Part shown: positions 10,425 to 40,525 of the stretch, piece by piece
Layout: each line of letters opens with the position of its first letter
How positions within the stretch are numbered: the stretch's first letter is position 1
From: Selaginella moellendorffii
Lineage: Eukaryota > Plantae > Lycopodiophyta
NCBI RefSeq assembly: GCF_000143415.4
Contig: NW_003314282.1
Location: 1,817,374 to 1,881,373 of the forward strand
Direction of reading: 5' to 3'
Length of the DNA: 64,000 bases
Notes under the pieces: generated by a model
Database searches by the model: none
What the model saw: the letters and a program-made list of their open reading frames with translations, nothing else
Told to the model about the DNA's origin: nothing
Made by a program: the position numbers and the translations under genes

Positions 10425-12126
10425 ATGGCGGCGATAGAGGAAGAAGGCGCCAGGGCGGCGATGGAGATCGTCTTCTACGATGTTGAGACGACGGTGCCGG
10501 AGGTGAAGGGGCAGGGTTATGATATCCTCGAGTTTGGCGCTGTGGTGGTGTCGGCCAGGGGACTGGGGGAGCTCGATTCCTTCACCACGCTCGTCCGCCC
10601 CTCATCCCTAGCCCTGGTCAGTCCCAGGAGCGTCTCCTGCAATGGGATCGTCCAGGACAGCCTCGTCGGAGCTCCATCGTTCCTGGAGATCGCCGATCGC
10701 GTCCATGCTCTGCTTCACGGTGAGTTTCTTGATGGATATTTTGGTGATTTTCTTGGCCGATTGATCGATCAGGGCGCGTGTGGGCGGGGCATAACATCTT
10801 GCGCTTTGACAATCTCCGGATCAAGGAGGCTTTCGCGAGCATTGGAAGGGCTGGGCCGGAAGCCGCTGGCCACATTGATACATTTCCATTGCTGCGAAAA
10901 AGCTTTGGCCAGAGAGCTGGAAATCTCAAGGTATGTTTTGCTTTGCTTTTCTTCTCCATCGATTCCAGGCTTCCTTTAGATGGCAACTCTAGCATCTTAT
11001 TTCGGGCTTGGCAAGCAAGAACACAGGTAGAGCGATCCACTCCCATCTCTCTTTTTTATTTGTTTCTAACTTTCTCTTTCTCGTCCAGGAGTCTCGCGGA
11101 CGTCCGTATGAACATCGAGGTTCTAAAGCTGTGTGCTACCGTACTCTTCCTGGTAAGGTCACCATTCTTGCAAGTTCTAAGCTCTCATGGTGTTTTCTTC
11201 TCGATTAATCTAGGAATCCAACTTCCCCGACATCTTCCCAATGGAGAGCATCGTCTCTCCAAATCAAAACTCGCCTTTTCTCGTCCCCGAGAGGCGCCAG
11301 AGCGCCAGGCTCTCGAGCTTGCGAGGAGACGCCTTTAATTTCAACTTGCTGGCCGTGTCACTGGAGGAGGCGATCAAACACGACGATGCGAATGGACACA
11401 AGCTTGAATCGAGAGAAGAAACCACCATGATATCTGCAACAACAACAAGAACAATCGAGCAAGCTACAGAACAAGAGAGAGTTTCCGAGGATTTAAGGAA
11501 CGACAAGTTCTTACGTCCAGACGAGATCTTCCTGGACTTTTTAGACGCCACGCACAATCCCGATGGGAAGTGGATCACTCTCCAGCACGCATCGCAGCAG
11601 CTCTGCATTCGCGAGACAAACGCCCGGGTCAAGTTCAGTGTGAGCGACAGATTTGCTTACAGCAGCGATGGCAAGCCAACTTTCAGCATCGTCATCGTCC
11701 CGACGCCAAAGCTGCTAGCAATCGCCAAGGAATGCGAGGTTCTCGTGAAGAAGGTGTCCACTTCCATGGGGATCGCTGCTGTGTGGCAGCCGGTGCTGGT
11801 TGCCAACGGAACTGGAGACGAAGCACTGCGCATCAAGTAAGAAAATTATTCCATCGTTCTAACTTTGAGATCAATCACACCTTTGCAGGATTGGAACCAG
11901 TGGAGATGGCGAGAGTGCGTCCTACACAACGAAGCTGTTCAAGAAGAAGCAAGAAGATGGAAGCTTAGAACGATTGAATCTACCAAGTGTAGATCCCAAA
12001 ACTTTCCAAGAATCAGTACCTGCTGGCTGTGGCGTGGACGTCGAGCTTCGTTGCGATGGCTATGCTTTCCAGGGAGGTAAAGTTGGTCTTCGATTCTTGG
12101 CTGAGCAGCTCTTCATACTCTGCTGA
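10425..12126 (+). CDS. NEN-like DEDDh exonuclease (NAC45/86-dependent exonuclease family), multi-exon
   Basis: EIVFYDVETTVP, ILEFGA, WAGHNILRFD, FGQRAGNLK, RSLADVRMNIEVLKLCATVLFL, ESNFP. Confidence 0.88.
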
Positions 12127-12299
12127 AACTTTCGTCAAAAACTTCGGGAGATACTAATTCTCCGTGTACAAAAATCTTCGCTGTCCATAAAAGAAAAAAG
12201 ACAATTGTTACAAGCAAAGGAGCCACTTTGTTTTACAAAATGTGTCTCCAGCCTCCTAAAACTTCCTAAAACTTTCTCACATACCGGTTCCTCCAAAAT

Positions 12300-13943
12300 C
12301 TACATCCTCTTTTCGACAAAACTTTGGTGCTGGCTATTCCTCCGGTTGACAACAGTTTCACCTGGCTCGCATGGCAAGATAGTGATGCTCAGCACTTGAT
12401 TCACTACCTCGCCAAAGCGGCAGCACTGCCTTCTCGGGACCTGTCGAGGAGATCTTAGAGAACTCTAGAAAGAAAGAGGCCGGGAGATTTACCTTGAACC
12501 AATTGTTGCTCAATGGCCTGGTGACGACTCGGATGGTGTCAAAGTCGGGAGCTTTCGAGTGGCCCATCCCAGGTAGCAGTAGCCTCGACCAGCAGTAGTT
12601 CTTACATTCCTTGGCAGATGGACTGTAGAGCTTGTACTCACTCACAACTCCGCCGTCTTCACTGCTCATGGTGTTATTGAGGAAGAAGAGGAACGGTGGC
12701 GACGGTAGCTTAACTTTGCGAGTGTCCAGATCGAACTCGGTTGGACCGTTCCTCGAGTTCCAGGCCTTGAATGTAATCTCTGCCTTCTCTAGTACCCTGG
12801 GATAAACTAGCTGATCAAATACCTGGACAACGTAGCCAGTCGAGATTGAAAACGTGAAGCCTTTGTCCTTGTTATAGCCAATCGTCTGCTGCAAGAAGTT
12901 GGACGAGTCCGCTGTCATTGCCTTGATCAGCAGCTGCAAGCTCTCGAGGCGGGAGAGCTCGGGAAACACTGGATCCATTGCTTCAATGTGATGCATGGAC
13001 ACAAAAGGTGTTATAGGATGAGCACTCAGCAATCCCAGCGGGTTTCCACGTATATCCATCTGCAAAGGACGAGATTAAAAAGACAAGAAAAAGAAACTTT
13101 TTGTACCTGATGGAAACCCGAGTGTTTCGTGAGTGGGACACCGAGCTCCAAAATGCAAGCGTACAGCCGGTCGTCACTCCCAGTGAGCTGCGGATAGTGC
13201 TCCAAGCATCTATCCTGCGATCGTGCCAAAGCCTTCGCGAGTGGATAGCTGATGGCAATGCCCCCACCTCCAAACGCCATCTGGTGGCTAAACGCAACGT
13301 TCTGGTTATGGCTCTCGGACACACTGCCGATGTAGAACATCTGGGACGAGTCGAAAGTCCCGAGAACACGAACCAGGTTGTCCACCGAGAAGACGGTATC
13401 GTCGTCGCAGAGAACCAGCCACTCCACACCCGTCAAGTTCATCCGGACGGTCTCGAGAACTATCCTGGCGATTCGGATTCCTGCTGGCGAGCCGTCCACA
13501 TTGGTGTACCGGAACCTCGAGGTGTCCTCGGAGATCCGGATAGGCGGGAGGCCAGTGTCCCACAAGTTTGGCTCCACTGGATCGTCGTGCCACACGAATC
13601 CACGCATTTGTAGCGGCCGCCACCACTGCCTCACCAGCTCCTTCCGGTCGATCCACAAGCTCGCGGAGCCTGCTATGCCAAAGACGATCTGATCCACTGC
13701 CAAGGTACTACCGCTGCCGCTACCGCTGCTGCCGCTGCTGCTGCTCTCGTCCTGCTCGATCCCGGGCAGATCGATCGGATCAAAGTCCCGGGGGAAGGTT
13801 GGAGCCCGCGAGGAATTGGCGACGAGCCCGACCCAGGCGCAGGTAAGAAGAGAGAGTGAGAACGCTGTCACGAGCAGCGTCCGGTAGTCTCTTCGATTGA
13901 GATTGAGGAAGAGCGCGATCCTCCTGCTCAGACCTAGCATCAT
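12300..13943 (-). CDS. DUF604 / Fringe-like GT31 glycosyltransferase, paralogue A (3 exons)
   Basis: N-terminal TM, IVFGIAGS, WWRP..MRGFVW, WLVLCDDDTVF, MAFGGGGIAISYPLA, GSDDRL, HQ/MDIRG, RRQCC. Confidence 0.92.
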
Positions 13944-14010
13944 CCCTTTGCGACGCTACCCTAAAACCCTACGTCAAAGGAGGAAATGGAGAAAGATCAT
14001 GGAGTACCTC

Positions 14011-15646
14011 CTAGAAAGGGACGATGCTCTCGCCCGGGCGACAGTTCGTCATGTTCACTTTCACGGTTTCTCCATCGTCCCAGTCTCCGATCTGGCAGCA
14101 TTGCCTGCGCGGCGCCTGGAAAGGAAGAATAGAGCAGGGAATGATAGATCCAAGATCCAAGAAAGAGAGATCCTATTCTCCAGACCTTGTACCAATCGGA
14201 ATGGAGTGGCTGGGCCACGACGCGGATCATCCCTGGCAGCTTGGCTTGCGACCAGCACATCATCTTGCTCGATGTGTAGCGCTGGTAGTAGCTCTCGATC
14301 CGGCCCTCTGGATCCCTCTCCTGGGCGTCGGCGAAGAACAAGAACGGCTGCTTGCAGATCCAGAAGGAGTTCCTGGAATCCAGATCGAATTCGCGGCTGT
14401 GACGCTTGTGATTCCACGCGCTAAACGTAATCTCCGCCTTCTGGAGCACCTTGGGGAAGACGATCTCCGGGAACACCTGGACGACATAGCCGGAGGAGAT
14501 CGAGAACGTGAGCCGGCGCTGCCGATCGTAGCAAATCGCCTGCTGCAAGAACCCCGGGCCGTGGAGATGCATCGATCGCGCCAGCGCCCGCGCGCCCTGG
14601 AGCGCATCCACATTGGGGAAGAGATCCACGAACTCGAGGTGATGGATCGACACGAACGGCGCCACGGGATGCGCGGCCAGCAGCCCCATCGCATTGCCGC
14701 GGACATCGCACTGCAAGAAAAGAGGAATCGATCGATCAGCAGCGCCATCGATCGCTCCCTAGCTAGCCAGCTCCAAGAAACCAAAATATTTCGACAGGAG
14801 AAACCCTAGGAGAGAGAGTTCTAGGAGTTCTATCTCTCTTACCTGGTGGAATCCAATCTCGCGAGTGAGCGGCACGCCCAGCTCCGCGATGCAAGCCCGC
14901 AATCGATCGTCGCTGCCGATGAGCTGAGGGTAGTGCTGGAGGCACTCGTCCTGGATCCCGGCGATGGCCTCCGCGAGGGGGTAGCTAATGGCGAATCCCG
15001 CGCCGCCAAAGGCCATGTCGTAGCTAAACGCGACGTTCTGGGCGTGGCTCTCCGAGGTAGCGCCGATGTAGACGAGCTGCGATGGATCATACTTGGCAAG
15101 AACTCTCACGAGATTCTCCACCGAGAAAACCGTGTCATCGTCGCAGAAGACGAACCACTTGATCGATCCGGGCAGCCCTAGCTGGAACGTCTCGAGCACG
15201 ATCCGAGCGATCCGGACGCCATTTGGGTGCCCGAGAGCTCCGCCCCGGATTGGATCTCGGAGCCTCTCCAGCGTGTTCTCCGATACGCGAATCTCCGGGA
15301 GCCCATCGATCGCCTCGCCCTCTCGATCCGGCTCGCGCTCCAGCCACACGAAGCCACGCATCGCATCCGGGCGCCACCATAGCCGGACGAACTCCCTGCG
15401 CCGCGGCCACAGCCCCGACGATCCGGCGATGCCGAAGACGATGCTCTGGAGCTCGGAATCGACCGTGCTGTTTTTGGGGCGGTGGACGATCCGGCGCTGC
15501 TCGATCACGCTGGGATGGGATTTGCGCTCCGCGACGCTGCCGATGGAGAGGACAAAGGCGATCCACGCGCAGCTGGCGATGAGCAAGAGGGCGGCAATCG
15601 TCACCGGACGAGACCCCAGATTCCTCCTTACCATCGCCGTGAGCAT
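14011..15646 (-). CDS. DUF604 / Fringe-like GT31 glycosyltransferase, paralogue B (3 exons), tandem to A
   Basis: IVFGIAGS, WFVFCDDDTVF, MAFGGAGFAISYPLA, GSDDRL, same intron positions as paralogue A; stop TAG 14013-14011. Confidence 0.92.
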
Positions 15647-15825
15647 GGTGGCTGCTAGAAACAAATCTCCTCCTCCTCCTCCTCACTCCCATCCGCCATA
15701 GCCAGGCCACGATGGAAGAGTCAATCAAAATGTTGCTACCATACTAAAGACTACCTAGTCCTTTTTCCCTGCTAGGTCTAAAAGCAAGAATAGCCATTAG
15801 GGTTTAAGGGGTTTATCACATTTTC

Positions 15826-16300
15826 GCTAGAGATCACGTAAGATTTTGGAGGAATCTCTTAGAATCTCTATCTTGGAGGAATGTCTGAAGAAAAAACCAA
15901 TTTTTTCTTCTCATGGATTGAAGGAATTAAGCGTCCAAGCATCGAAAGATCACGAGTTCTATCTTCCTTGGAGGAATCTCTATGATCGCATTCTATCTTT
16001 CCTGCGATCTTGGAGGAATCTCCATGACTTGAAAAGCAAATTTTTTTCTCATTCTCTTCTCATGGATTGAAGAAGTTATGCGTGAGACCACTGTCCACTT
16101 CGCTCCAGATCCCTCCAGCGTGAATGTGATGCTAGAGATCACGAGTGTGATCGCATTCTATCTAGAATCTCTATTCCTGCTACCTTGGAGGAATCTCTGC
16201 GACTCTGGGCGAGAAACAAACCAATTTTTTCTTATGGATTGAAGAAGTTAAGCGTGAGACCACTGTCGACTATACTCCAGATCCCTCCAGCCGTGAAGGT
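15826..16300. repeat. Degenerate tandem re-duplications of the 3' end of the adjacent transporter gene
   Basis: atggattgaagaagtta(a/t)gcgtgagaccactgtc occurs at ~16063 and ~16234, with a shorter copy at ~15913; ttggaggaat(c/g)tc occurs five times. Confidence 0.8.
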
Positions 16301-18398
16301 GATGCTAAAAACAATGCCCAGGATCCCCAGCGTCCAGTTGAGATACCAGGTGAAGCTGAACCTCGGTGGCTTCTTGATCTTGAGCCACATGAAGCACGGG
16401 TAGCAGAACGTCACGGGGACGCTCGTCAGTCCGCCTAGCAGCCCCGCGAAGCTGGAGATGAAAGGCAGCGCCACTCCGACGAAGAACGCGAAGAAGGTGA
16501 AGAAGAGGCGGAAGGCAACGCGAGCGAGGAGAGGCGTTGGCTTGTTCTTCCTGGCCGTGAAACTCTGCTCGAACGCGTCGAACATCGGCATGGAGTAGAT
16601 CTGGAAGCTGCTGATCGAGTTGAGGACGACGAACAAGAAGGTGATGGCCATCCACGGGCTTGGGATGTCTGGATGGAGCGCGTACATGGAGAAGAGAATT
16701 CCACTGGGAAGCATCTGGACGAAGAAAACCACGTAAAAATCAGTTTTTTTCGTGTTCGAGAGTTTTTGAAGCTCACCATTCGTCCGTAAGCCCAGTATCC
16801 GGCGATGGCGATCGGGAAGTAGCAAGCAGCGACTATCGCAAACGCAACTTTGGCTCCTCTCCACATTGGAGACTTAGCCGGGTGTTTCAAAGAGGATGGC
16901 ATCGTTCCCTGTGATTAGAGCAAAAGCTAAGAAAAACGCGATTTTTCCTATGAAGTACCTGGATCTCGAGCACTAGATTGTGTCCGCGAAATGCAAACGC
17001 GATGATCCCGAGAGCATTGAGAACCGAGAAGATGTTCCCGGCGGTGTGATCCGGCTTGACGATATCATACGTTATTCCCGGTGGTCTCGGCCTGCTGATG
17101 GATAGCGTCCAGACCAAGGTGGTGTAAGCCACGGCCATGACGGCTCCAACCAGAGAAACTCCAGCGATGGAGTTGAGGTTTGGAAGCTGCGCGAGGATAG
17201 CACACAAGATCGTGAAGACGAGGTACCACTCCACGGTTGTGAGTGATCCTCCGTGGCAATCCCGGCACACGGTTCTGTAAAAGAGCTCCAGAGTTCCACC
17301 GCCGATGATGATGAGCCCGGTTGCGGTTCCTCCCGAGAGATTTACGACCGGGAAGATTGCTAGCCACGCTCCAAGCTTTGGTCCTGAAAGAAAAAGCATG
17401 GAGATACTTTTTCGTGAGCAAAGTTCTAGAGTTAGTTTCAAAGTTTACCAAAAGCTTCTTGAGCGAGCTCGACGTATCGACTGTGGCGTTTGCCAGGGAC
17501 AGCTTCGTGTAGCTGGATGAGGATCCAGAGTGTGTAGAGCTGCCAAATAAAAGCTGCCACCAGAGCCAAAACTCCCCAAGTCCTGTACCAAAAAGGAAAA
17601 GAAGAACTTTGTCAAAAGTTGATCGAGAAAAGCTAGCTATGGAAGACAAATCCACCAAGAAACCTGACAAGAATCTCTTCAAAATTCATACAAATCAAAG
17701 CTAGATCGCACCATTAGTCAAGCAAAAACTTGGATTTGGATAGTAGAACGAGGAAGTTGTGAAAGAAGAGATGATATCGATCCAAAAGATAAGCAAAGAA
17801 AATCTCAACAGTCCGTCACAAACCACGCAAGCACGAAGAGAGATGAAAGCTCGCTAGAACAAACTAGAAACCATAGAAGAAGATCTTACCAGCCAAGGAA
17901 CGTAAGAGCCACCGGGAGCAAGAGCGCTTGGAATCCAATGCTCGCGTTGAGATTGTGGAACGCCGAGTAGTAAGCATTCCCATTGCGCGAGGCCGTGATG
18001 GGGAGCCACGCTTCCTGGGGATTGAGCTTGGTGATATGCCCGATATCCTCGAGATAAGCTCTCATATTCGTGAGAGCCTTCCTCATGGGCGTTCCAATCG
18101 GCGAGAAGAGCACCTTGGGCGATCGCAGGAGGCGCGAGGATGGATTGGGTTGCTGGCGAGCCGGGGATCCAAGATTCGATGGCGGGCGAGTGCTGGATGG
18201 AGTGGGAGTGTAAGTCCCATTCCCCTGCGGCGTGAGCATCCCGGACGATGGTGTGTGGCCTTGGAATGGAGGAGCGATCGATGCCCAGTGGCTGCCGGTG
18301 GGCGTCAGCGGCGGCGTGGATGCATTGGGCGTCGCTGGGATTGACACCACTTCCCTCTCGATCACCTCGTGGACGAGGAGATTGGAGCGATCCTCCAT
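16232..18398 (-). CDS. Lysine-histidine transporter-like (LHT-like 8 type) amino-acid permease, 5 exons
   Basis: EAWLPITASRNGNAYYSAFHNLNA, QLPNLNSIAGVSL, FAFRGHNLVLEIQ, SFQIYSMP, PVTFCYPCFMW. Confidence 0.93.
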
Positions 18399-19016
18399 AG
18401 CTCAAACCAGTTGGATCTTCCAATCAGATAGATGGGTGCTCCAATTGATCTGCTCGCTATCGATCGGCGCTGCCCATCTGGTGGATCTGGGTGATCGACG
18501 AAGAAGAGGAGGAGGAATTTCAAGTGGAAATCGCGGCCCCCGCCAACTGTGCCAACCAGAAGTCCGCGCACAATGCGATTGACAAAAGGGGATGATGGGC
18601 AACGACGAAGACTCGCGGTGGCCATGTTGACAAAAGATCAATCTCTGACAGGAAAAAATCTACATCTACTTTGCGACTATCCGTGCCAAGAGCGCAAATC
18701 GATCGGACCAGCTGGCCAGTCCATTTCACCCAGCTTGACTGACTATTTCTTTAAACCCTAGAATCCAGGAGGGAAGAACCCTAATTCCCCCTCCTTTTTT
18801 CTTTCGCTGGCGGTGATGTGAAATGTGATTGATGCTGCTGCTAGGATCTCTCCCGAGCGATGCTTTGCCCTAAAGATGGTAGAGCGACCTTGTGAGGATT
18901 TAGGTGCGGCACAGCGATGATTCAAGCTCCTTACTCAGCTGAGCCAGAGACAGAACCCTAAAATTATTTTAGGCGGTCTTTTCGCCACCCGAATCCCTAA
19001 CCCTAGTTTCAGTTCA

Positions 19017-19751
19017 ATGGGAGAGTTAGACGCAGCGCTCCAGGAAGCCGTGGCGGACTACGACCGTGGCGACAAGGGGCCATTTCTTGTGGCCCAAGAG
19101 GTACCTTGGCAAACGTATGATGAATGGATGTGTTGCCTCGAGTGTTGCTGGCGGCTAGGATACAAGGCCGGCGATGTGTGGATGTACGGGGATCCTTCCC
19201 TCGTGCACCGGACAATCTCAAACTGGTTCAACGCTACGATCATCACCCAGATCCAGCTGATGCCCGAGGTTGAGTGCGCGATCGACGTGATCTCCGCCGC
19301 CGGGGCTTCCCGGCTAGAGACAGTTCAGGGCGACAAGGAGCCTGACCTCTGCTATTTCTCCGCGTCAAGGCTCGAGCCAGTGCGAGCCGTGATCGAGGTG
19401 GCGTACAGGAACGAGGGGCTGGAGGCGCTCAAGAGCTCGGTGGATATGTGGGAAGCCAGTGGCTCGCGGCTGGCGATTGGTGTCAAAATCACCCGGGAGC
19501 TCGATCTCACATTTGTAGCCAAAGAGCGCGGCGCAGCGGCGCTGACGGAGATAAAGTTTGGGCCTGAGTTCTTGGACGAGAGTAACAAGGAAGCGTTTGT
19601 AATGGAATTTCCGTTGTCGTGCTTTACTGGGGATGTGGAGGGCGATCACCGCATCAGGTTTGATCTCTTTGGGCTGCAACAGTATGTTATTAAGATGATT
19701 GAGTGGGAAAGACTAGCAAAGGAAATGGAGATGCCTGTAAAGAAAGAGTGA
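19017..19751 (+). CDS. Uma2/DUF820-like putative restriction endonuclease (PD-(D/E)xK fold), intronless, copy 1
   Basis: Uma2-like motifs: VPWQTY, RL(G/E)Y..GDV, PSLVH, KEPD, VIEVAY, AIGVKI; 244 aa open frame conserved in copy 2. Confidence 0.75.
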   Translation: MGELDAALQEAVADYDRGDKGPFLVAQEVPWQTYDEWMCCLECCWRLGYKAGDVWMYGDPSLVHRTISNWFNATIITQIQLMPEVECAIDVISAAGASRLETVQGDKEPDLCYFSASRLEPVRAVIEVAYRNEGLEALKSSVDMWEASGSRLAIGVKITRELDLTFVAKERGAAALTEIKFGPEFLDESNKEAFVMEFPLSCFTGDVEGDHRIRFDLFGLQQYVIKMIEWERLAKEMEMPVKKE

Positions 19752-20399
19752 AACGCTAATTTAATTTAGTTCTTCCTCTTGGCTCGTTTTTTCAAAAAAC
19801 TACCCTCTCTCAATCGAAGATATCGTCTTCCACCTTGTATATATCGTCTTGAAGAAATGCCTCCATGTTCCAGCGATTGTTCTAAAGAATTTTCCACTGA
19901 TCGCTCAACAAGGACCTGCACTTCCATGGACGAGTTGAGGTTCTCAGACGAGAACAGGCAGACCAGGGCATGACTTATCAATCAAGAAAGAAACGACGTA
20001 CCTGATTGCGCTCTCCCAACATGGTTCTACTTTGTCAAGTTGACTTGGATTGGCATACCAGCCTACATTTCATGGGCGTATAAAATACATCAGCTATCAT
20101 CTTATGCCTACACCAATTGGATCCGTAATGTATTTGGCAAGTCAGAGCTGTTGCATGGAATCAGCGCAATTACCCACCTGAAATTTCCCACCTTCATCAT
20201 GGCGGGCCTGAAATGCATGGATGTCTTTTGCGCCAGGCTCATCCCGGTCATGGACGCCACACGAGCGATCCTCTGTCACGGCAAGATCATTCCCCTGGAA
20301 AAGCCTCCTTCACGGTCTTTGTACTTAGAGTGAATTGTTATCTTTCTTTGTACTTAGAGTGATGTTGATGGACTTATGTCTTACCGGTTTCCCAACTGG

Positions 20400-20880
20400 G
20401 AGAGGCTCTAAGGACACTGTCCTTAGCAAAGCCGGCCCCAACTGTGCTTGCCACCTTGGAAGCTCCCACAACTTCTGTTCCTATCAGAAACTCCAACTCC
20501 AGTTCCAACGTACATGATGAGTATGGTGTTAAGAAGGAAGCTCTCGATGGTTTGCCGATGAAGGCCGAGGATGTCTAAGGGGACAAGAGATCATGTCCAG
20601 TTTGGGGCTTGTGACATCTCAGTGTTCAGACCTGATCTCGACAACACTTATGAGCATTCGCCACCATGGCTCATATGGCAGGGCGACATTGCAGTGATGC
20701 GAATTCTTACGCTATGATGCTCCATAAGTGATGCTGCAGGTGAAGTGGGTGCACAAGATTGTGGTCAAGGGAGGATGATACTTTTGTGACAGATTTCTTG
20801 CTTGATCTGTGGTGGCGTGCAAGAGGTGGCGGAGGTGTTTGAGAAGCTGCCACATCAGTTGTATGAACACGATAGAAACC
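20400..20880 (+). pseudogene. Degraded PPR-repeat remnant, copy 1
   Basis: Broken frames give MKAEDV*GDK..LGACD, WVHKIV..EDDTFVTDFLLDL, CGGVQEVAEVFEKLPH, resembling PLS-class PPR motifs. Confidence 0.45.
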
Positions 20881-21092
20881 TTTAAGGTTCAAGCTAGTTG
20901 GCTGGGGCTCTCGGGCTGTGGCAACAATCCATTTCACTGATAGGATTGAGTGGCATAAACCTAGGCCAATGACGAGTAGAAGTTGAAGATGTAAACCATC
21001 AAACTAATCCAACCTTGTTTCCTCTGAGAGAGATGGCAAAAGAGATTACAGTTTAGTGAGAGTATTAAGAATATTTAAGTACAATACACCTA

Positions 21093-21815
21093 CTAGAACA
21101 TAGCAGCATGTTCAGCCGCGGCTGCAAGGCTGATCTCAGAGATACCAGGAGCAGTCAACTGATTTCTCACCTCGGGTACCTCGAACAACTCATTCCAGTC
21201 CAGCTTAAGCACACCTTCTGGATCAAGATTGTCCACAGGTCCCCCCCTCGCCTTCACCCAAACGCGAAGAGCCGGAGCACACCCTTTGCGCACTTGAATT
21301 GCAAGGGCAATCCTGGCACCGGAATTCTCAGCTGCTGTAACCGCATCAAGATCGGCCACCACCTCGGCAATGTCTTCGTTCTGGTAAACAACCTGGGCAA
21401 CCAAAACCACCCGAGCAGCGATGATACTTTGACCTGGGGATCTCTCCACCACAAGAACATCAACCTGCTGCAATCGATCCTTGTACTCCACCAGCCCCCC
21501 TGGGCAAACGTCAACCAAGCGATTCCCTAGGGTCTGGACGCCGAGGCCCTCCAGCTGCATCCCTAGTTTCGTGAACCAGTACGTGCGCACGGCCTCATGG
21601 GGCAGGGAGTGATCATGTTGCAGGAAAAGACTCCCGCTATCCTTGAGGTACAGCATATTCAGCTTGTGCGCTCTCGTTTCCAGGTGGAGACGCCGGAATT
21701 CTTCGGGATTGATGATCATTGGCACAGCGACGGGTCCCTTGTTCTTTTCGAATTCCCCCTCCATCGCATCGCACATTCCAAACAGAGAATCGGCCAGCCC
21801 CTGTGACGGCCTCAT
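21093..21815 (-). CDS. Divergent Uma2-like paralogue with substituted catalytic residues (pseudo-nuclease), intronless, copy 1
   Basis: Collinear blocks with the 19017 protein: KGP, HSLPH vs PSLVH, QQVD vs KEPD, VAQVVYQNE vs VIEVAYRNE, SGARIALAIQV vs SGSRLAIGVKI, VWVKARG vs FVAKERG. Confidence 0.7.
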   Translation of the reverse strand: MRPSQGLADSLFGMCDAMEGEFEKNKGPVAVPMIINPEEFRRLHLETRAHKLNMLYLKDSGSLFLQHDHSLPHEAVRTYWFTKLGMQLEGLGVQTLGNRLVDVCPGGLVEYKDRLQQVDVLVVERSPGQSIIAARVVLVAQVVYQNEDIAEVVADLDAVTAAENSGARIALAIQVRKGCAPALRVWVKARGGPVDNLDPEGVLKLDWNELFEVPEVRNQLTAPGISEISLAAAAEHAAMF

Positions 21816-21936
21816 TAAACCCTGTCCGCTTGAAAGCTTCTAGGTCATGTTGGAAAAGAAGTTAAAATGCCAGAGGAAGAACCCTAAAATTCATTTAGGC
21901 GGGAATTTTGTTTTTTTTTTTTCCAACAGTGTTCTT

Positions 21937-23479
21937 ATGCCTAGGTTTTCTAGGTCGATCGCGTCGCCGGCGATGGATTTCGGCAGCGCCGCTTGTATTC
22001 CAGACGCTCTTCCAGCCGCCGGTTCCAGATCCGCGGGGAGCTTCGCAAGGAACTGGAAGATTTCTTGCTCGAGGCGAGGATCGCGATCAGCACGGTAATG
22101 TCGCATGGCGGAAGGCGCTGGAATCGGTCCGGCCGCGGATCGCGCAGGCGCGGGCACGGCCGCTTGATGTGCTGCTTCACGATCGCTACCACCAAGCTCG
22201 AGGCTGTGGCGAATGTGGCCGTCCGGGTGGAGCTCGCGGATGGGAGCGTTGGATGGGGCGAAGCTCCGACTCTCTTTCCGGTCACTGCGGAGGATCAGAC
22301 TGTAGCTCTGGACCAGGCTGGGCGATGCTGCCGGATGCTCGAGCAGCTTGAGCCAGGATTGAGCTGCATGGAAATCCTTTCCAGCGTTGGAAATCTTCTT
22401 CCAGGCCACGACTATGCTTCCGTAAAGTATTGCTTCTCATATTTTTCTTTTCTTCTCTTCAAGCTTCTCACATTTTCTTTCTCTACGGCAGGCTCGAGCA
22501 GGGATTGAGATGGCTGTGATCGATGCCGCAGCTCGTAGCGTTGGAATTCCACTCTGGAAATTTTTTGGTGGAGCATCCAACTTTGTCACGACGGATATCA
22601 CGGTATTTGGGTTGAGTAAGTGCTTGAGCTGGTTCTTTCTCTTATTTGTAGATTCCAATATGTGAGCCGGATAATGCTGCTCGCCTCGCCATGGAATATG
22701 CTCAAAGAGGCTTCCGGACGGTGAAAACCAAAGTTGGAGGCAGAGATTTGTCGTCCGACATTGCCATGCTCCATGCGATTCGAAGTAGCCACCCAACTTG
22801 CAATCTCATTCTTGATGCATACGAAGGCTACACGTCGCATGAAGCCCTACGAGTTCTACAGGAGCTCCAAGGTGACCAAATCTTTTCTAGTCTCCAAACT
22901 TTAACCATGTTTCTCTTCATGTAGAACAGGGGATCACTCCTATTCTCTTCGAGCAGCCAGTGGCACGCGCAGACTGGGATGGTTTGCGCTCGTCAGCAAA
23001 AAGGCGAGAGAACTCTATGGGGTTCCCGTTGCTGCCGATGAAAGCTGCCGGAGTTTGGACGACGCCCAGCGCATTGCCGACGAGGAGCTTGCTCCAGTGA
23101 TAAACGTGAAGCTCGCGAAGCTCGGCGTCCTTGGAGCTCTCGAGGTCATCTCTCTGGCTCGTGAGAACAAGATAGAGTTGATGATTGGAGGCATGGTGGA
23201 GACCCGATTAGGGATGGGCTTTGCTGCTCATCTTGCTGCCGGATTTGGCTTCTTCAGGTACGCATAACACTTGAGAATCCTCCTTCCTACGAGTGATTGT
23301 TTGTAGATACATCGACTTGGACACTCCCTTGTTACTTGCCGAGGATCCAATCGAAGGTGGTTATCAAGGTGTGTTTGATGCCTGTATCGTTCTCTAACTT
23401 CCTTTTTCTCTTTTTATCAGTGCACTCGAAGAAGTACATTATGACCAATGCTCCTGGACAAGGAATCAACTTAAAATGA
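21937..23479 (+). pseudogene. L-Ala-D/L-Glu (dipeptide) epimerase, enolase superfamily, frameshifted copy
   Basis: Versus copy 2: 8-bp deletion (~22072), 11-bp deletion (~22176), 1-bp deletion (~22983), DANEG->DAYEG. Confidence 0.88.
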
Positions 23480-23499
23480 TCATTCTGCTTGGTTTAGCT

Positions 23500-25876
23500 T
23501 TTTTGCAAAACCAAGTTAATTAACCTAGATTGGCATTATAATGAAATATACCAAAACATATATAATATTAAATAAAAAATTTATATTGTTTTGAATCTTC
23601 TAATCCTTTATAAATTTACAATATGTTACTTTAAAAGCATTTATACTTATATAAGGACTTATATATTATGTACAAAGATTATAGCACTAAAATATTCAAA
23701 TAAAAATTAGTAGGAAAAATGATAGAAATAAAAACAATTAGTGACATAATAACATATTAGTTTTTATTATACTTTAGTTTTAGATGAAAATTCATATTTA
23801 CTTTACTGTTAAATTATTCAGCACTTTAGAAATCAAATTTATGGAATTATTTATTTTTAAAAAAATATTAACATTATTAAGATTTTATTAAATGAGATTA
23901 AAACCACTAAATTTTAGTTTGAAAATAAATTAAATATTATTAAATAAACTTTATATACATAATTTAGATTTAAAGTTAATGTTTTAAAGATTTTAAATGT
24001 CTGAAAGAAAGATAAAACTAAAATTTATTATGATTTTAAAATTTTATTATTATATTAATATAAAAATTTTATTCTTTTGAAAAATAGTTAATCTGGAAAA
24101 AAACCATCAATATCAAATTTTTATTTTAATTTTTCAGATGAACAAAGCAGAAATTAAACACTTCTTTTGAGAAATATAAGTTTATGAAATTTAATCATAA
24201 ACAGTTTTACTACATCTATAAACTTTGTAACAAAATATATATACAATGTTTATTCAATGTATCTATTAAAATTTCAATAATATAATATATTTTATTTTAA
24301 ATTGTTTTATTTTGATTACAATTATAAAACTAACTAAAAGTTTTATTTGTATGTGAATATGAAATAACTATACAAATGGTAAAAAATAATATAGAAGATA
24401 TAATAATCTTACTTTAAAAAATATATATATTAAATATGGAAAAATATAAAAGTTGATTCGAGTTAGCTGTAATCTTCTTGTGTGGCTGAGATGTGGAGAA
24501 GTCATGGAGTTATTGGATGTTGATGGACGCTTTGTTCGAGACAAGATAGTGAGAGCTTTCGGGTTTGATATCGAAAATAAAACGTTTGCTTCTTTTTGAT
24601 TTTCCAATCTCATCATCGTGCTGACATACACTTTCCAGAATCACTAGATATGATGATGTTCTAAAGTAAGTTTTAAGGGGTATAAAGAATTTACTAAAAA
24701 CTATAGTGATACAATAATTTTTTTTTAATAAAACTAATAAATGAAACTCCATAAAAAGTATAGCATAATTGCGTTTCCCCTCACAATTAAAAAGTATAGT
24801 TGTACTATAAGTTGAAAACATTACATATATAGAGATGTTTTTTTATACTGTATAATAATATTATAAGCTTTTAAAATATATACATAGCTCACATTCTTTT
24901 ACTTATACAAAAAATTTCTAAGTAGCTCTAGCATATATTTAAATATTTTAAAAGTTTTCTTAAAACAGTAAAAGAAAGATTAGTTAAAGAAAGCTAAGAA
25001 GTAAACACAATACATAATTATATATACATATATAAAGTTTATAACTATATGTATGTAATACTATATACTAAATATGTTTATCAAATTGAGATTAAATTTA
25101 GTCTAGCAATTTCTGTAAATGAAAAAGGGTATTTACCCCAATGAATATATCCTATATTAGTGGAGGTAAAAGGCATTATGAAGAGCATAATTTTATTACC
25201 TTTATTATTTCTGAACATTTTTTTTATTTGTTCCTTTTTTATTTTATTTAAATCTATTGTAATTGTTTATATGAAATCTATTTTTCCTTTATTTATATTT
25301 CCATACCATCATCCATCAAGAACTATATCTTATAAATACTACTTTATTATCCTCATTCTGCAATGTTTTTTCTTGTTTTTGTATCTTCTTTAGATTTAAC
25401 TTTTGGAGTTATGATTGTTGAGTGTGATTATATATTCATACTACTTTAATGCTTAGTGTGTTTCCATCTTTAGCTTCCATAAGATATAATTACATGGTCT
25501 TTTGTTTTTAAGTCTTTTGCTGTTGTAAAATGTGATTTTAATATTGATTTAAGTGTATTTGAGGAATCTGCTTTAGAAATAATTATTAAGACAAGTTAAA
25601 GATTTCATATAGTGATTTATTATATATCTTTCCATGCCTTTTCAAATTTCTTGGTTCAAGCCACCTTCTTGTGTTTATAAATATTTCTTCATCTACAATA
25701 TTTTATTTTCTTGAGATATTAATTTCTTTTGACTTTGACAATTTTACTTTTTAGTTTGATATTGAATTTAGTGTTTCCCATTTTCCTCTAAATGATCTGT
25801 ATTATAGAGTGTTTTTATTTTGTCTTGTTAGTGAAGTATTTAATTAATTATAACATTGAGGATTCCCTTGTTCTAA
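23500..25876. other. Very AT-rich non-genic tract, probably a decayed transposon relic (duplicated at 35400-37745)
   Basis: Strong AT bias, no credible ORF, shared with copy 2; TE class could not be identified by eye. Confidence 0.4.
24465..24620 (+). pseudogene. Inserted fragment of the CR-like N-terminal header domain (copy 1 only)
   Basis: RCGEVMELLDVDGRFVRDKIVRAFGFDIENK/RLLLFDFPIS aligns ungapped (one frameshift) with RYEGATTPVEVDKVFTLDELCRRFDLDPLMHEVFLCGIPIS at ~26340(-); absent at the equivalent site in copy 2. Confidence 0.65.
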
Positions 25877-26345
25877 AGAACTCTTTTGTTGGGGGAACGC
25901 AGCAGCAAGGAACATTTCCCAAAAGACTGCCCAAGACTCACGAATCCCTCAGAAGTGTCCGAGCTAGAAACGCTGAACGCGTCACAAGCCTGAAAAATAC
26001 TTCCAATCTCTTCGGTGCTTGTGTGCACAACCTCCCTGCGAATCACGAACTTGTAAATGGTGGATGGATGACAATCTCGACAGGCGCACTCACTGCCGCT
26101 ATTGAATCTGAATCTGGATCTATCGAAATCGTGAAGGGTCTCTCTCTCGAGCAACCTTCGAAAGGTTGGCCGTGCCATCTGATGAGAGGAACAGTGTAGA
26201 GTTGCGCTGGCGGCGATGAGATGGGAATGCCGCAGAGGAAGACTTCGTGCATTAGAGGATCCAGGTCGAATCGGCGACAGAGCTCGTCAAGAGTGAAAAC
26301 TTTATCCACTTCGACTGGCGTTGTCGCACCCTCGTATCGAGAACG
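25875..26345 (-). pseudogene. 5' fragment of a CR-like gene (header + linker), truncated at the duplication breakpoint
   Basis: VDKVFTLDELCRRFDLDP..FLCGIPISS..GCSRERPFTI then TSTEEIGSIFQACDAF; inverted copy of 30091-30461. Confidence 0.7.
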
Positions 26346-30090: not shown

Positions 30091-30777
30091 TCTGTGGCAT
30101 TCCCATCTCATCGCCGCCAGCGCATACACTGTTCCTCTCATCAAAAGCCACGGCCAACCTTTCGAAGATGGCTCGAGAGAGAGACCCTTCACGATTTCGG
30201 ATAGATCCAGATTCAGATTCGGAGCGGTGAGTGAGCCTGTCGAGATTTTCATCCATCCACCATTTACAGGTTCTTCGTTTTCGTGCAGGGGGGCTTGTGG
30301 ACACAAGCACCGAGGAGATTGGAAGTATTTTTCAGGCTTGTGACGCGTTCAACGTTTCTAGCTCGAACACTTGGGAGGGGATTCGTGACTTCTTGCTTGA
30401 CATCGGCAGTCTTTTGGGAAAGGTTCCTTGCTACTGCGCTCCACCAACAAAAGAGTTCTTTTACATCCATCGCAAGCACCATTCAGATATCGAAGCCAGA
30501 CGGGCAAGATGACTTGGTTGTGTTCGCTGATACTCTGCCGTTTTACCAGATACTTCGGAGGCTTACAGAGAGAGGAGACAAAAGACTGCGTTCTACCATG
30601 TCAGCTGACGGAAACAAGGTTTTTCCCCCAAGTTGTCCTAAGTTTTCGAAGCAAAGGAGGGCTTGTTATCGGGTGGAGGTGGAACGCCTTGTTTCTTGGG
30701 CAAGCTAAAAGATTCGAGTTGGGTCAGCGATCGAGCTTCCACCAGCTTTCATCTATGGCGAGGTCGACATTTCTCAC
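30091..30777 (+). pseudogene. Degraded paralogue of the CR-REase gene, cut off by duplication copy 2
   Basis: STEEIGSIFQACDAFNV..GIRDFLLDIGSLLGKVPCYCAPPTKEF ~ NSEIREILAHCAAYDV..TIKGFLLNFDELRGRMPLCITPPRPEF; VFADTLPFYQI ~ VVADCIPFHRI; LPPAFIYGEV ~ PLPAFIYGKV. Confidence 0.75.
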
Positions 30778-30814
30778 TTTCGCCACCCAAATCCCTAGCC
30801 CTAGTTTCAGTGCA

Positions 30815-31549
30815 ATGGGAGAGTTAGACGCAGCGCTCCAGGAAGCCGTGGCGGCCTACGACCGTGGCGAGAAGGGGCCATTTCTTGTGGCCCAAGAGGT
30901 ACCTTGGCAAACGTATGATGAATGGATGTGTTGCCTCGAGTGTTGCTGGCGGCTAGAATACAAGGCCGGCGATGTGTGGATGTACGGGGATCCTTCCCTC
31001 GTGCACCGGACAATCTCAAACTGGTTCAACGCTACGATCATCACCCAGATCCAGTTGATACCCGAGGTTGAGTGCGCGATCGACGTGATCTCCGCCGCCG
31101 GGGCCTCCCGGCTAGAGACAATTCAGGGCGACAAGGAGCCTGACCTTAGCTATTTCTCCGCCTCAAGGCTCGAGCCAGTGCGAGCCGTGATCGAGGTGGC
31201 GTACAAGAACGAGGGGCTGGAGGCGCTCAAGAGCTCGGTGGATATGTGGGAAGCCAGTGGCTCGCTGCTGGCGATTGGTGTCAAAATCACCCGGGAGCTC
31301 GATCTCACATTTGTAGCCAAGGAGCGCAGCGCAGCGGCGCTGACGGAGATAAAGTTTGGGCCTGAGTTCTTGGACGAGAGTAACAAGGAAGCGTTTGTAC
31401 TGGAATTTCCGTTGTCGTGCTTTACTGGGGATGTGGAGGGCGATCACCGCATCAGGTTTGATCTCTTTGGGCTGCAACAGTATGTTAATAAGATGATTGA
31501 GTGGGAAAGACTAGCAAAGGAAATGGAGTTACCTGTAAAGAAAGAGTGA
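30815..31549 (+). CDS. Uma2/DUF820-like putative endonuclease, copy 2
   Basis: 244 aa, 12 substitutions versus copy 1, RLEY, KEPD and IEVAY retained. Confidence 0.75.
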   Translation: MGELDAALQEAVAAYDRGEKGPFLVAQEVPWQTYDEWMCCLECCWRLEYKAGDVWMYGDPSLVHRTISNWFNATIITQIQLIPEVECAIDVISAAGASRLETIQGDKEPDLSYFSASRLEPVRAVIEVAYKNEGLEALKSSVDMWEASGSLLAIGVKITRELDLTFVAKERSAAALTEIKFGPEFLDESNKEAFVLEFPLSCFTGDVEGDHRIRFDLFGLQQYVNKMIEWERLAKEMELPVKKE

Positions 31550-32199
31550 AACGCTAATTGAGTTCTTCGTCCTGGCTCGTTTTTTCAAAAAACTACCGTC
31601 TCCCAATCGACATCCACCTTTTTGTATTTATCGTCTTGAAGAAGAGCCTCCATGTTCCACGATTGTTCTAAAGAATTTTCCACTGATCGCTCAACAAGGA
31701 CCTGCATTTCCATGGACGAGTTGAGGTTCTCAGGCAGACCAGGGCATGACTTATCAATCAAGAAAGAAAGACCAAAAAACGACGTACCTGGATCTCGAGC
31801 ACTAGATTGCGCTCTCCCAACATGGTTCTACTTTGTCAAGTTCACTTGAATTGGCATACCAGCCTACATTTCATGGGCGTACAAAATACATTAGCTATCA
31901 TCATATGCCTACACCAATTGGATCCGTAATGTATTTGGCAAGTCAGAGCTGCTGCATGGAATTAGCACAATTAACAAATTGTAAAGAAATGAAATTTCCC
32001 ACCTTCATCACGGCGGGCCTGAAATGCATGGATGTTATTTTGGGCCAGGCTCATCCCGGTCATGGACGCCGCACGAGCGATCCTCTGTCACGGCAAGATC
32101 ATTGCCCCGGAAAAGCCTCCTTCACGCCTTGCCAAGCTTGGGGAGGTCTTTGTACTTAGAGTGAATTGTTTTAGAGTGATGTTGTCGGACTTATGTTGT

Positions 32200-32725
32200 T
32201 GGACACTGTCCTTAGCAAAGCCGCCACCTTGGAAGCTCCCGCAAGCTTCCCACCTTGGAAGCTCCCGCAACTTCTGTTCCAATTAGAACTCCTCCAAGTC
32301 CGGTTCCAACGTACACGATCCCTGAGGAGGATCGCAGTTAAGAGTATGGTGTTTTGATGGAAACTCTCGATGGTTTGCCGATGAAGGCCGAGGATGTCCA
32401 AGGGGACAAGAGATCATCTCCAATTTGGGGCTTGTGACATCTCGGTGTTGAGACCTGATCTCGACAACAGACGTGTTCGCCGCCACGGCATGCTTGGCTC
32501 ACATGGCAGGGCGCGAGTTGCAGTGATGCGAGTTCTTACGCTATGATGCTCCACAAGTGCTCCGCAAGTACTGTTGCAGGTGAAGTGGGTGCACAAGATT
32601 GTGGCCAAGGAAGGAGGATGATACTTTTGTGGCAAATTTCTTGCTTGATCTGTGGTGGCATGCAAAAGGTGGCGGAGGTGTTTGAGAAGCTGCCATATCA
32701 GTTGTATGAACACGATAGAAACCTG
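32200..32725 (+). pseudogene. Degraded PPR-repeat remnant, copy 2
   Basis: MKAEDVQGDK..LGACD, WVHKIV, EDDTFVANFLLDL, CGGMQKVAEVFEKLPY across broken frames. Confidence 0.45.
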
Positions 32726-32952
32726 TAAGGTTCAAGCTAGTTTGGCTGGGGCTCTCAGGCTGTGACAATGTTTTAAATTTCACTGATAGGATTGAGTGGC
32801 ATAAACTTAGGCCAATGACGAGTAGAAGTTGATTGCCAGGTGAGTGAGATGTAAACCATCAAACTAATCCAACCTTGTTTCCTCTGAGAGAGATGGCAAA
32901 AGAGATTACAGTTTAGTGAGAGTATTAAGAATATTTAAGTACAATACACCTA

Positions 32953-33675
32953 CTAGAACATAGCAGCATGTTCAGCCGCGGCTGCAAGGCTGATCTCAGA
33001 GATACCAGGAGCAGTCAACTGATTTCTCACCTCGGGTACCTCGAACAACTCATTCCAGTCCAGCTTAAGCACACCTTCTGGATCAAGATTGTCCACAGGT
33101 CCCCCCCTCGCCTTCACCCAAACGCGAAGAGCCGGAGCACACCCTTTGCGCACTTGAATTGCAAGGGCAATCCTGGCACCGGAATTCTCAGCTGCTGTAA
33201 CCGCATCAAGATCGGCCACCACCTCGGCAATGTCTTCGTTCTGGTAAACAACCTGGGCAACCAAAACCACCCGAGCAGCGATGATACTTTGACCTGGGGA
33301 TCTCTCCACCACAAGAACATCAACCTGCTGCAATCGATCCTTGTACTCTACCAGCCCCCCTGGGCAAACGTCCACCAAGCGATTCCCTAGGGTCTGGACG
33401 CTGAGCCCCTCCAGCTGCATCCCTAGTTTCGTGGACCAGTACGTGCGCACGGCCTCATGGGGCAGGGAGTGATCATGTTGCAGGAAAAGACTCCCGCTAT
33501 CCTTGAGGTACAGCATATTCAGCTTGTGCGCTCTCGTTTCCAGGTGGAGACGCCGGAATTCTTCGGCATTGATGATCATTGGCACAGCGACAGGTCCCTT
33601 GTTCCTTTCGAATTCCCCGTCCATCGCATCGCACAATCCAAACAGAGAATCGGCCAGCCCCTGTGACGGCCTCAT
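32953..33675 (-). CDS. Uma2-like pseudo-nuclease, copy 2
   Basis: 240 aa, 6 substitutions versus copy 1, all in the N-terminal ~92 residues. Confidence 0.7.
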   Translation of the reverse strand: MRPSQGLADSLFGLCDAMDGEFERNKGPVAVPMIINAEEFRRLHLETRAHKLNMLYLKDSGSLFLQHDHSLPHEAVRTYWSTKLGMQLEGLSVQTLGNRLVDVCPGGLVEYKDRLQQVDVLVVERSPGQSIIAARVVLVAQVVYQNEDIAEVVADLDAVTAAENSGARIALAIQVRKGCAPALRVWVKARGGPVDNLDPEGVLKLDWNELFEVPEVRNQLTAPGISEISLAAAAEHAAMF

Positions 33676-33791
33676 TAAACCCTGTCCTGTTAAAATGCCC
33701 TAAAACAAGCTTTCTATAAAATGCCAGAGGAAGAACCCTAAAATTGATTTAGGCGGGAATTTTGATTTTTTTTTTTTCCAACAGTGATCTT

Positions 33792-35354
33792 ATGCCTAGG
33801 TTTTCTAGGTCGATCGCGTCGCCGGCGATGGATTTCGGCAGCGCCGCTTGTATTCCAGACGCTCTTCCAGCCGCCGGTTCCAGATCCGCGGGGAGCTTCG
33901 CAAGGAACTGGAAGATTTCTTGCTCGATGCGGCCGGGCGAGGATCGCGATCAGCACGGTAATGTCGCATGGCGGAAGGCGCTGGAATCGGTCCGGCCGCG
34001 GATCGCGCAGGCGCGGGCACGGCCGCTTGATGTGCCGCTGAAAGCGCCCTTCGCGATCGCTACCACCAAGCTCGAGGCTGTGGCGAATGTGGCCGTCCGG
34101 GTGGAGCTCGCGGATGGGAGCGTTGGATGGGGCGAAGCTCCGACGCTCTTTCCAGTCACTGCGGAGGATCAGACTGTAGCTCTGGACCAGGCTGGGCGAT
34201 GCTGCCGGATGCTCGAGCAGCTTGAGCCAGGATTGAGCTGCATGGAAATCCTTTCCAGCGTTGGAAATCTTCTTCCAGGCCACGGCTATGCTTCCGTAAA
34301 GTATTGCTTCTCATATTTTTCTTTTCTTCTCTTCAAGCTTCTCACATTTTCTTTCTCTACGGCAGGCTCGAGCAGGGATTGAGATGGCTGTGATCGATGC
34401 CGCAGCTCGTAGCGTTGGAATTCCACTCTGGAAATTTTTTGGTGGAGCATCCAACTTTGTCACGACGGATATCACGGTATTTGGGTTGAGTAAGTGCTTG
34501 AGCTGGTTCTTTCTCTTGTTTGTAGATTCCAATATGTGAGCCGGATAATGCTGCTCGCCTCGCCATGGAATATGCTCAAAGAGGCTTCCGGACGGTGAAA
34601 ACCAAAGTTGGAGGCAGAGATTTGTCGTCCGACATTGCCATGCTCCATGCGATTCGAAGTAGCCACCCAACTTGCAATCTCATTCTTGATGCAAACGAAG
34701 GCTACACGTCGCATGAAGCCTTACGAGTTCTACAGGAGCTCCAAGGTGACCAAATCTTTTCTAGTCTCCAAACTTTAACCATGTTTCTCTTCATGTAGAA
34801 CAGGGGATCACTCCTATTCTCTTCGAGCAGCCAGTGGCACGCGCAGACTGGGATGGCCTTGCGCTCGTCAGCAAAAAGGCGAGAGAACTCTATGGCGTCC
34901 CCGTTGCTGCCGACGAAAGCTGCCGGAGTTTGGACGACGCCCAGCGCATTGCCGACGAGGAGCTTGCTCCAGTGATAAACGTGAAGCTCGCGAAGCTCGG
35001 CGTCCTTGGAGCTCTCGAGGTCATCTCTCTGGCTCGTGAGAAGAAGATAGAGTTGATGATTGGAGGCATGGTGGAGACCCGATTGGGGATGGGCTTTGCT
35101 GCTCATCTTGCTGCCGGATTTGGCTTCTTCAGGTACGCATAACACTTGAGAATCCTCCTTCCTACGAGTGATTGTTTGTAGATACATCGACTTGGACACT
35201 CCCTTGTTACTTGCCGAGGATCCAATCGAAGGTGGTTATCAAGGTGTGTTTGATGCCTGTATCGTTCTTTAACTTTTTTTTTCTCTTTTTATCAGTACAC
35301 TCGAAGAAGTACATTATGACCGATGCTCCTGGACAAGGAATCAACTTAAAATGA
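33792..35354 (+). CDS. L-Ala-D/L-Glu (dipeptide) epimerase, enolase superfamily, intact; start may be 33792 or 33828
   Basis: PLKAPFAIA, GWGEAP, KTKVG, LDANEG, FEQP, ADES, INVKLAK, MIGGMVE, IDLDTP; GT-AG introns. Confidence 0.92.

Positions 35355-36756: not shown

Positions 36757-36758
<2 letters not shown>

Positions 36759-36836
<78 letters not shown>
36759..36836. repeat. Compound (AT)n(AC)n microsatellite, expanded in copy 2 only
   Basis: Seen directly; the equivalent site at ~25020 has only a few units. Confidence 0.95.
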
Positions 36837-36839
<3 letters not shown>

Positions 36840-40457: not shown

Positions 40458-40525
40458 TTTAAACTACTTTGATTTGGGCTTAAGGCCTGTTACTTGTGAT
40501 AACTCGCCAAAAAGAGCATACATCT

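Follow-up and report, generated by a model that had tools for sequence, protein, structure and literature searches.

Do two short genes that face each other in the genome of the lycophyte Selaginella moellendorffii form a nuclease and its antidote, or are they paralogues without any obligatory link? The question is raised by positions 19017 to 21815 of a 64,000-nucleotide stretch of contig NW_003314282.1, which at its full length is called the window here. A preliminary description of this locus had proposed that one gene (A) encodes an active nuclease of the Uma2 (DUF820) family and that the other (B) encodes a catalytically dead homologue that neutralizes or regulates it, the two forming a poison-antidote, selfish, or immune module. 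We confirmed in the sequence that both open reading frames (ORFs) are present with the positions, lengths, and facing, convergent orientation that had been given for them, and the best matches of both proteins lay in the S. moellendorffii proteome. The two genes and the spacer between them are as follows.

Gene A: 19017 to 19751, plus strand; ORF of 244 amino acids, predicted Uma2-like protein of the PD-(D/E)xK fold
A-B spacer: 19752 to 21092, between both 3' ends; 1.34 kb, no RNA coverage, fast decay between duplicates
Gene B: 21093 to 21815, minus strand; ORF of 240 amino acids, highly diverged member of the family of A

The explanation that we favor, with a probability of about 0.5 for the whole of it, is that A and B are ordinary birth-and-death paralogues with no obligatory link, A being a probable metal-dependent nuclease and B a retained, noncatalytic pseudo-enzyme. 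Both would belong to a multicopy, fast-turnover, eukaryotic Uma2-like family, and they would lie next to each other because this family spreads by local duplication. As to gene structure, the genes had been called intronless, and RNA contigs indeed ran unbroken over A from 19018 to 19431 and over B from 21186 to 21819, but in the public annotation the last ~30 codons of the B allele (P0006) are removed by splicing. The family domain begins near residue 20 of A and near residue 26 of B, so that only about 20 to 26 residues precede it, and no start resembling a signal peptide is present in either protein.

Kinship of A and B and the identity of their family

Compared pairwise, the two proteins were hardly more alike than chance would give (BLASTP, E 0.001, with 18% identity across 118 residues), and a profile of the six closest relatives of A reached B with an hhalign probability of 14%. 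When the A profile was used in an exhaustive HMMER search, 71 proteins were collected at an E value of ≤0.001, and the family profile was a 37-sequence alignment of these proteins from which B was left out. This profile matched B over 160 columns with an hhalign probability of 95.9% (E 6e-9), while the reversed control had a probability of 0.1%; the corresponding hidden Markov model (HMM) scored B at 35.7 bits, whereas the highest score among 2000 shuffled versions of B was 4.9 bits. All six motif pairs quoted in the preliminary description lay opposite each other in the profile-profile alignment, and its view of A and B as distant, collinear paralogues was borne out; judged by these profiles, the paralogy is real and well past chance. 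In the family tree, the branch leading to B measured 3.5 changes per site (median end branch, 0.73), too long for B to be placed within the family or for a derivation from the neighboring A clade to be resolved. In the databases searched, a B-type gene was found at this locus only.

Several kinds of evidence connected the family with Uma2. Five relatives matched the Pfam Uma2 model below its threshold, at 12.1 to 20.8 bits, the best of them at 19.6 to 20.8 bits with E values of 3e-4 to 7e-4, and two oomycete members carry the UniRef name "Restriction endonuclease domain-containing protein." In a language-model search, A and B independently reached the same fungal Atlas clusters at 0.94 to 0.95, and Uma2 was present in 23% of the members of one of these clusters. 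With an AlphaFold model of A, a Foldseek search of the PDB placed 1wdj at ranks 1 and 2 (E 0.024), followed by 9y1l, 3ot2, and 6okh; a Foldseek-independent scan of 48,161 chains returned 1wdj (Z 6.7), 3ijm (Z 5.6), 3ot2 (Z 5.5), and 9y1l (Z 5.5) as ranks 1 to 4; and the first three matches of an Atlas shape search were Uma2 or "restriction endonuclease domain" clusters, with template modeling (TM) scores of 0.42 to 0.49. The fold ranking of A thus appears specific for Uma2, although the scores are middling and were obtained with a poor model (predicted local distance difference test [pLDDT] score, 50.6). Uma2 structures had been expected for both proteins; they came out on top for A, but the model of B (pLDDT 37.5) was unusable and returned unrelated small alpha/beta folds, which we disregarded. 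Because of this, the fold of B is assigned, provisionally, by homology. Both models were made before the wider family was known.

The consensus strings also showed that A's family and Uma2 share the order of their elements. Taken together, the subthreshold Pfam matches, the UniRef names, the Atlas clusters, the fold matches of A, and the shared order of elements make it very likely that the family of A is Uma2-like. To this extent the earlier assignment to Uma2 stood, but the Pfam threshold was not reached, and the family lies outside PF05685 as curated. No credible match came from sequence searches of the PDB, whether the queries were the A1 and A3 profiles or the proteins P0061 and P0035. 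A PADLOC match of A to PDC-S17 (E 0.013) was weak and was judged not meaningful.

Named members of the family came from S. moellendorffii, Adiantum capillus-veneris, Adiantum nelumboides, Mycena, Thraustotheca, Phytophthora, and Aphanomyces, and further members were found in fungal Atlas clusters and other assemblies. The tree contained at least four Selaginella lineages, two of them sister to Adiantum lineages, which, as the tree is read, places the origin of the family before the split of lycophytes and ferns. The family is multicopy and turns over quickly, in a birth-and-death pattern. At the locus of the A-type gene P0004 (L004), a member of another subfamily (P0016-like; 12848 to 13771, minus strand) is convergent with P0004 and is a pseudogene: two stop codons interrupt its frame, KEPD has become KESN, and a core strand is deleted. 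An unannotated ORF of 291 codons at the P0008 locus (L005; 1586 to 2458, plus strand) lies 8 kb upstream of P0008 and is very similar to it, with Gly replacing the Asp of the PD motif (KEPG), and a Phytophthora locus holds two family fragments. A scan of 20 longer relatives revealed no fusion to a PHD finger.

A separate observation concerns the Selaginella protein P0019 (773 amino acids), whose model places an N-terminal ubiquitin domain ahead of a Uma2-like domain and also includes SMP lipid-binding and C2 domains. The part made up of ubiquitin and the restriction endonuclease (REase) fold resembles the Crinkler architecture, and the model may be a fusion of neighboring genes.

Residues kept in A and replaced in B

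Three residues were invariant in the 37-sequence alignment (His64, Glu127, and Glu133 in A numbering), and eight were nearly so (Pro22, Trp45, Lys107, Pro109, Asp110, Leu138, Trp145, and Gly155). All of them are present in A, with Asp110 in KEPD, Glu127 in EVAY, and Glu133 in NE. A would therefore represent the conserved type of the family, with its set of His, Lys-x-Pro-Asp, Glu-Val, and Asn-Glu. Because this (nearly) invariant set of its 37 relatives is kept, A would most likely be a metal-dependent phosphodiesterase acting on nucleic acid, as its fold and residues suggest.

B retains Pro28, His73, Asp119, Tyr144, and Asn146-Glu147. It carries Gln141 in place of the invariant Glu127, Gln116 in place of Lys107, and Val118 in place of Pro109, and it has no equivalents of Trp45, Trp145, and Gly155. 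The changes from PD to VD and from E to Q that had been noticed in B were thus present (Pro109 to Val118 and Glu127 to Gln141), and the replacement of the Lys came in addition. The Uma2 trait made up of a His, the Asp of PD, and the Glu of EV is complete in A; in B, His73 and Asp119 remain and the Glu has become Gln141. Metal binding in PD-(D/E)xK enzymes involves the acidic residue on the EV strand (PMC3424549). With Gln at this position and the only conserved Lys lost, B is very probably noncatalytic. We propose that B has the same family origin as A and then changed in a burst, in which the Lys, several residues of the core, and the invariant Glu were lost; most likely noncatalytic for this reason, it would have been kept as a protein-coding pseudo-enzyme and may still bind a substrate or a partner. 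An active nuclease beside a dead homologue therefore remains a plausible description at the level of residues, which are all kept in A and partly lost in B, but the poison-antidote, selfish, or immune role that had been attached to it was unsupported.

Tandem copies, the second haplotype, and the relation between A and B

The pair occurs twice in the window, within a tandem unit whose gene content was taken from the comparison with locus L001.

Gene A': 30815 to 31549, plus strand; second intact copy of A, 95% amino acid identity, found by tblastn
Gene B': 32953 to 33675, minus strand; second intact copy of B, 97.5% amino acid identity, found by tblastn and alignment
Tandem unit, copy 1: 18980 to 25876; A, B, an epimerase-like gene of the enolase superfamily (MR_MLE), and an AT-rich block, found by self-blastn
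Tandem unit, copy 2: 30778 to 37745; found by self-blastn, with one unit on the scaffold of the other haplotype

Scaffold GL377729.1 (L001) is collinear with positions 10761 to 18973 and 30774 to 43239 of the window at 98.3 to 98.6% identity and carries a single unit, that is, one pair compared with two in the window. It is the other haplotype, and because this collinear scaffold has one unit, the duplication is haplotype specific; the pair and the neighboring epimerase-like gene would have been copied together in a recent tandem event. The A allele of L001 (12415 to 12590, the counterpart of 19017 to 19100 in the window) has its ATG, followed after about codon 13 by a 16-nucleotide deletion that shifts the frame, and the public annotation gives it a product of 212 amino acids from an internal Met. 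The B allele of L001 has an intact frame. The relationships among the copies were mosaic: A' was nearer to the A of the other haplotype (synonymous divergence [dS], 0.027) than A is (dS 0.049), and B' was nearer to B (dS 0.024) than to the B of the other haplotype (dS 0.054). The dS between copies was 2 to 3 times below the spacer divergence. These patterns may have arisen by gene conversion.

The two copies of the unit differed from each other as follows.

A coding sequence: 2.4% substitutions, 0 indel events
B coding sequence: 1.4% substitutions, 0 indel events
Adjacent epimerase-like gene: 1.4% substitutions, 12 gap columns (columns, not events)
Two spacers, 1765 columns: 6.5 to 7.1% substitutions, 25 indel events

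The A-B spacer alone showed 7.1% substitutions and 22 indel events relative to its second copy. At the spacer rate, approximately 10 indel events would be expected in each coding sequence, and none was seen (P about 3e-5 each). The substitution rates were also lower than in the spacers (Fisher's test, P 9e-10 for B and 3e-6 for A). Compared with older paralogues, A had an omega (ratio of nonsynonymous to synonymous rates) of 0.25 to 0.26 (P<1e-9).

Expression of both genes was low. In three stranded RNA-seq runs, the flanking transporter and epimerase-like genes had depths of 10 to 29, and A had a depth of about 1 in the sense orientation; the B allele of the window had 0 reads at ≥97% likeness, a level of read mapping at which some copies are not separable. 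A fourth run gave a 414-nucleotide contig over A with two bases specific to A' and a 634-nucleotide contig over B that matched the B of the other haplotype at 17 of 17 variant positions. That this run is RNA follows from the splice joints of the neighboring gene in its contigs and from the empty spacer. Spacer depth was zero in all four RNA runs, and no transcript spanned it. The contig over A and the contig of the other haplotype's B show transcription of both gene types, at levels that are low or depend on conditions.

These results bear on whether B is a gene at all. It might be a young pseudogene or nonfunctional ORF that has not yet been broken, with an apparent constraint produced by gene conversion between the tandem copies. 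The missing invariant residues, the very long branch, the zero reads on the B allele of the window in three runs, and the marginal omega tests are what one would see in that case, and a dS between copies below the spacer divergence is what conversion would give. However, the full 240-codon frame is present in all three B copies, including the more diverged allele of the other haplotype (dS 0.054), no indel was seen where about 10 per copy pair would be expected at the spacer rate, and the B allele of the other haplotype is transcribed. Additionally, the accumulation of 3.5 changes per site without a break in the frame needs long-term selection on the reading frame. We therefore consider a pseudogene origin of B unlikely.

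The proposal of a poison-antidote or selfish module, in which a toxic nuclease A and a neutralizing dead homologue B would favor the transmission of the linked pair, can be examined against the A-type genes elsewhere in the genome. No ORF of the family, whether B-type or other, lies within 10 kb of the intact A-type genes of the P0002 and P0003 loci (L002 and L003), and the sole family neighbor of the A-type gene P0004 at L004 is the broken member of another subfamily. The putative toxin type, when intact, is thus not always accompanied by a putative antidote. Besides A itself, three A-type lineages have intact motifs and are under purifying selection (omega ~0.25) with no B linked to them, and because they are kept in this state, A-type proteins appear to be tolerated alone. 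The other haplotype carries a frameshifted A beside an intact, transcribed B, which is a weak point in the argument, since a "resistant" allele would look alike. Both genes were lowly expressed in the runs examined, neither protein has a header or signal, and no mobility feature was found around the pair, which is flanked by ordinary housekeeping genes. On the other side stand the tight linkage and coduplication of A and B, the difference of two pairs versus one between haplotypes, and the resemblance of a broken A with an intact B to a "resistant" allele; bacterial Uma2 has been proposed as a possible solo toxin (PMC2701414), and REase-fold domains are toxin modules in Crinkler effectors (PMC5289972). 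In our judgment, a poison-antidote or selfish cassette is highly improbable here, and an immune module was also unsupported. The linkage of the pair itself was upheld, with the genes 1.34 kb apart and duplicated together, but it does not extend to the intact A-type paralogues elsewhere, which are unpaired.

Known PD-(D/E)xK heterodimers, such as XPF-ERCC1 and Mus81-Eme1, consist of a catalytic subunit and a paralogue that lacks the catalytic acidic residues. By analogy, a dead B could dimerize with A and target, tune, or restrict its cutting, for example, by turning a double-strand cutter into a nickase. Such a partnership would fit an active-looking and an inactive-looking paralogue that lie 1.3 kb apart, were duplicated together, and are both constrained; in addition, the TT1808 entry 1wdj has two chains, and cyanobacterial Uma2 genes occur mostly in paralogue cassettes (PMC2701414). 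However, A-type paralogues exist without B, the other haplotype retains and transcribes B next to a frameshifted A, and B occurs at this locus only in the databases searched. A prediction of the A-B complex gave ipSAE values of 0.07 and 0.06 in a run in which alignments were not used, and these values speak neither for nor against binding. We hold a partnership of this kind to be possible but less likely than the favored explanation. On a further view, the locus would be a eukaryotic Uma2-fold nuclease and pseudo-nuclease module in which B binds and restrains A, a plant counterpart of the cyanobacterial paralogous cassettes, and its polymorphism would make it a candidate for a poison-antidote or self/non-self system. 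If true, one haplotype of the sequenced plant would carry two full modules and its counterpart a resistant-like allele of the "B-only" kind; we regard this as very unlikely.

The favored reading, that A and B are ordinary paralogues of a Uma2-like family, explains the data without an obligatory A-B partnership, and a number of results weigh against it. Neither A nor B matched any Pfam model even at an E value of ≤10 (the gathering score of Uma2, PF05685, is 27 bits), and neither matched NCBIfam. The poor model of A and the unusable model of B were both derived from shallow alignments. When the family profile was set against 77 cyanobacterial Uma2 proteins, hhalign gave a weak match (probability, 17%; E 1.4e-3; reversed control, E 0.25) in which the EV strands were in register. 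The nuclease activity of Uma2 proteins is itself only predicted (PMC3424549, PMC9403480, and PMC2701414). As for the retention of B, omega among its three copies was 0.41 to 0.48 (P 0.04 to 0.2) and was calculated from 10 to 23 substitutions; because these are so few, the case for constraint on B depends chiefly on the absence of indels and on a low rate of substitution, both of which gene conversion between the copies could also yield. Finally, the coduplication, the tight linkage, and the kept degenerate partner fit a functional pair equally well.

Other features of the window lie outside this argument. A transposon origin of the pair was rejected, as the pair lacks its own repeats and is surrounded by ordinary genes. 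AT-rich blocks with a G+C content of 0.23 to 0.24, compared with ~0.5 elsewhere, occupy the equivalent place in each copy of the tandem unit (24001 to 26000 and 36001 to 38000). Inverted repeats of ~370 nucleotides with 86.8% identity (25875 to 26236 and 30091 to 30461) flank a 4.6-kb stretch between the tandem copies; this stretch contains ORFs at 26.4 to 28.15 kb, is missing from the scaffold of the other haplotype at the corresponding place, and may be a transposon-like insertion. Within A, five reads from one RNA run, as well as two contigs from a second run, follow the window over 19564 to 19676 and then diverge; these reads and contigs are oriented as a minus-strand RNA would be, and the sequence joined at 19676 was not found in the window or in six related loci. 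The MR_MLE epimerase-like gene uses alternative splice sites 5 nucleotides apart at two introns in three RNA-seq runs (22421 or 22426 to 22492 and 22869 to 22923 or 22928).

Comparison with known systems

Uma2 was catalogued as bacterial in a 2012 survey of PD-(D/E)xK proteins (PMC3424549), and a 2014 survey of fungal domains contained a single fungal Uma2 match (PMC4102429). In the literature searched, we found no published description of a Uma2-like family in plants, oomycetes, or fungi or of a pair of active and degenerate members in such a family. Uma2/DUF820 is a large restriction-fold family without a demonstrated function, and our finding suggests that it has a sister family among eukaryotes, with members in lycophytes, ferns, oomycetes, and fungi. 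The advance is one of annotation and not a demonstrated new system.

The bacterial Uma2 proteins (DUF820, COG4636, PF05685; TT1808 [1wdj], Ava_3926 [3ot2], and 9y1l) resemble the A/B family in having, in the same order, a strand with a Pro-x-Ser..His/Asn turn at its end, a (K/R)xPD strand, and a hydrophobic EV(A/V)(Y/S) strand, and then a helix followed by another hydrophobic strand. Their structures were the top structural matches of A, and some relatives had weak matches to the Pfam model. In contrast to the bacterial proteins, the A/B family is eukaryotic (lycophyte, fern, oomycete, and fungi), and A and B are ~240 amino acids long compared with ~180, with an added C-terminal part. The EVxSP of the bacterial proteins is EVAYxNE(S) in the A/B family, which also has a conserved Lys before the PD motif, and A and B themselves fall under every Pfam threshold.

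Crinkler (CR) effectors (Zhang et al., 2016, in the summary given by PMC5289972) share with the A/B family an REase-fold domain in a eukaryote, lineage-specific expansion, and occurrence in oomycetes. Unlike them, A and B have no ubiquitin-like header, LFLAK-type N terminus, NTPase, or kinase module. The XPF-ERCC1 and Mus81-Eme1 heterodimers are similar to the pair in that an apparently intact member stands alongside a paralogue without the acidic residue; they belong to a different branch of the fold, however, and their partners are not encoded side by side.

A parallel in gene arrangement is offered by the cyanobacterial cassettes of COG4636 (Uma2) paralogues, which have been discussed as possible toxin-antitoxin-like or solo-toxin genes (Makarova, Wolf, and Koonin, 2009, PMC2701414). 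In both cases paralogous Uma2-type genes are adjacent, and in cyanobacteria the arrangement is recurrent. The cyanobacterial cassettes are prokaryotic and operon-like, and a degenerate partner was not reported for them (PMC2701414), whereas A and B are convergent, each with its own promoter side, lie in a plant genome, and include one partner with degenerate residues. An intact-looking member beside a conserved but residue-degenerate one thus provides an experimental handle on the eukaryotic role of this fold, and the same locus provides one on whether paralogous Uma2 pairs, as in cyanobacteria, act jointly.

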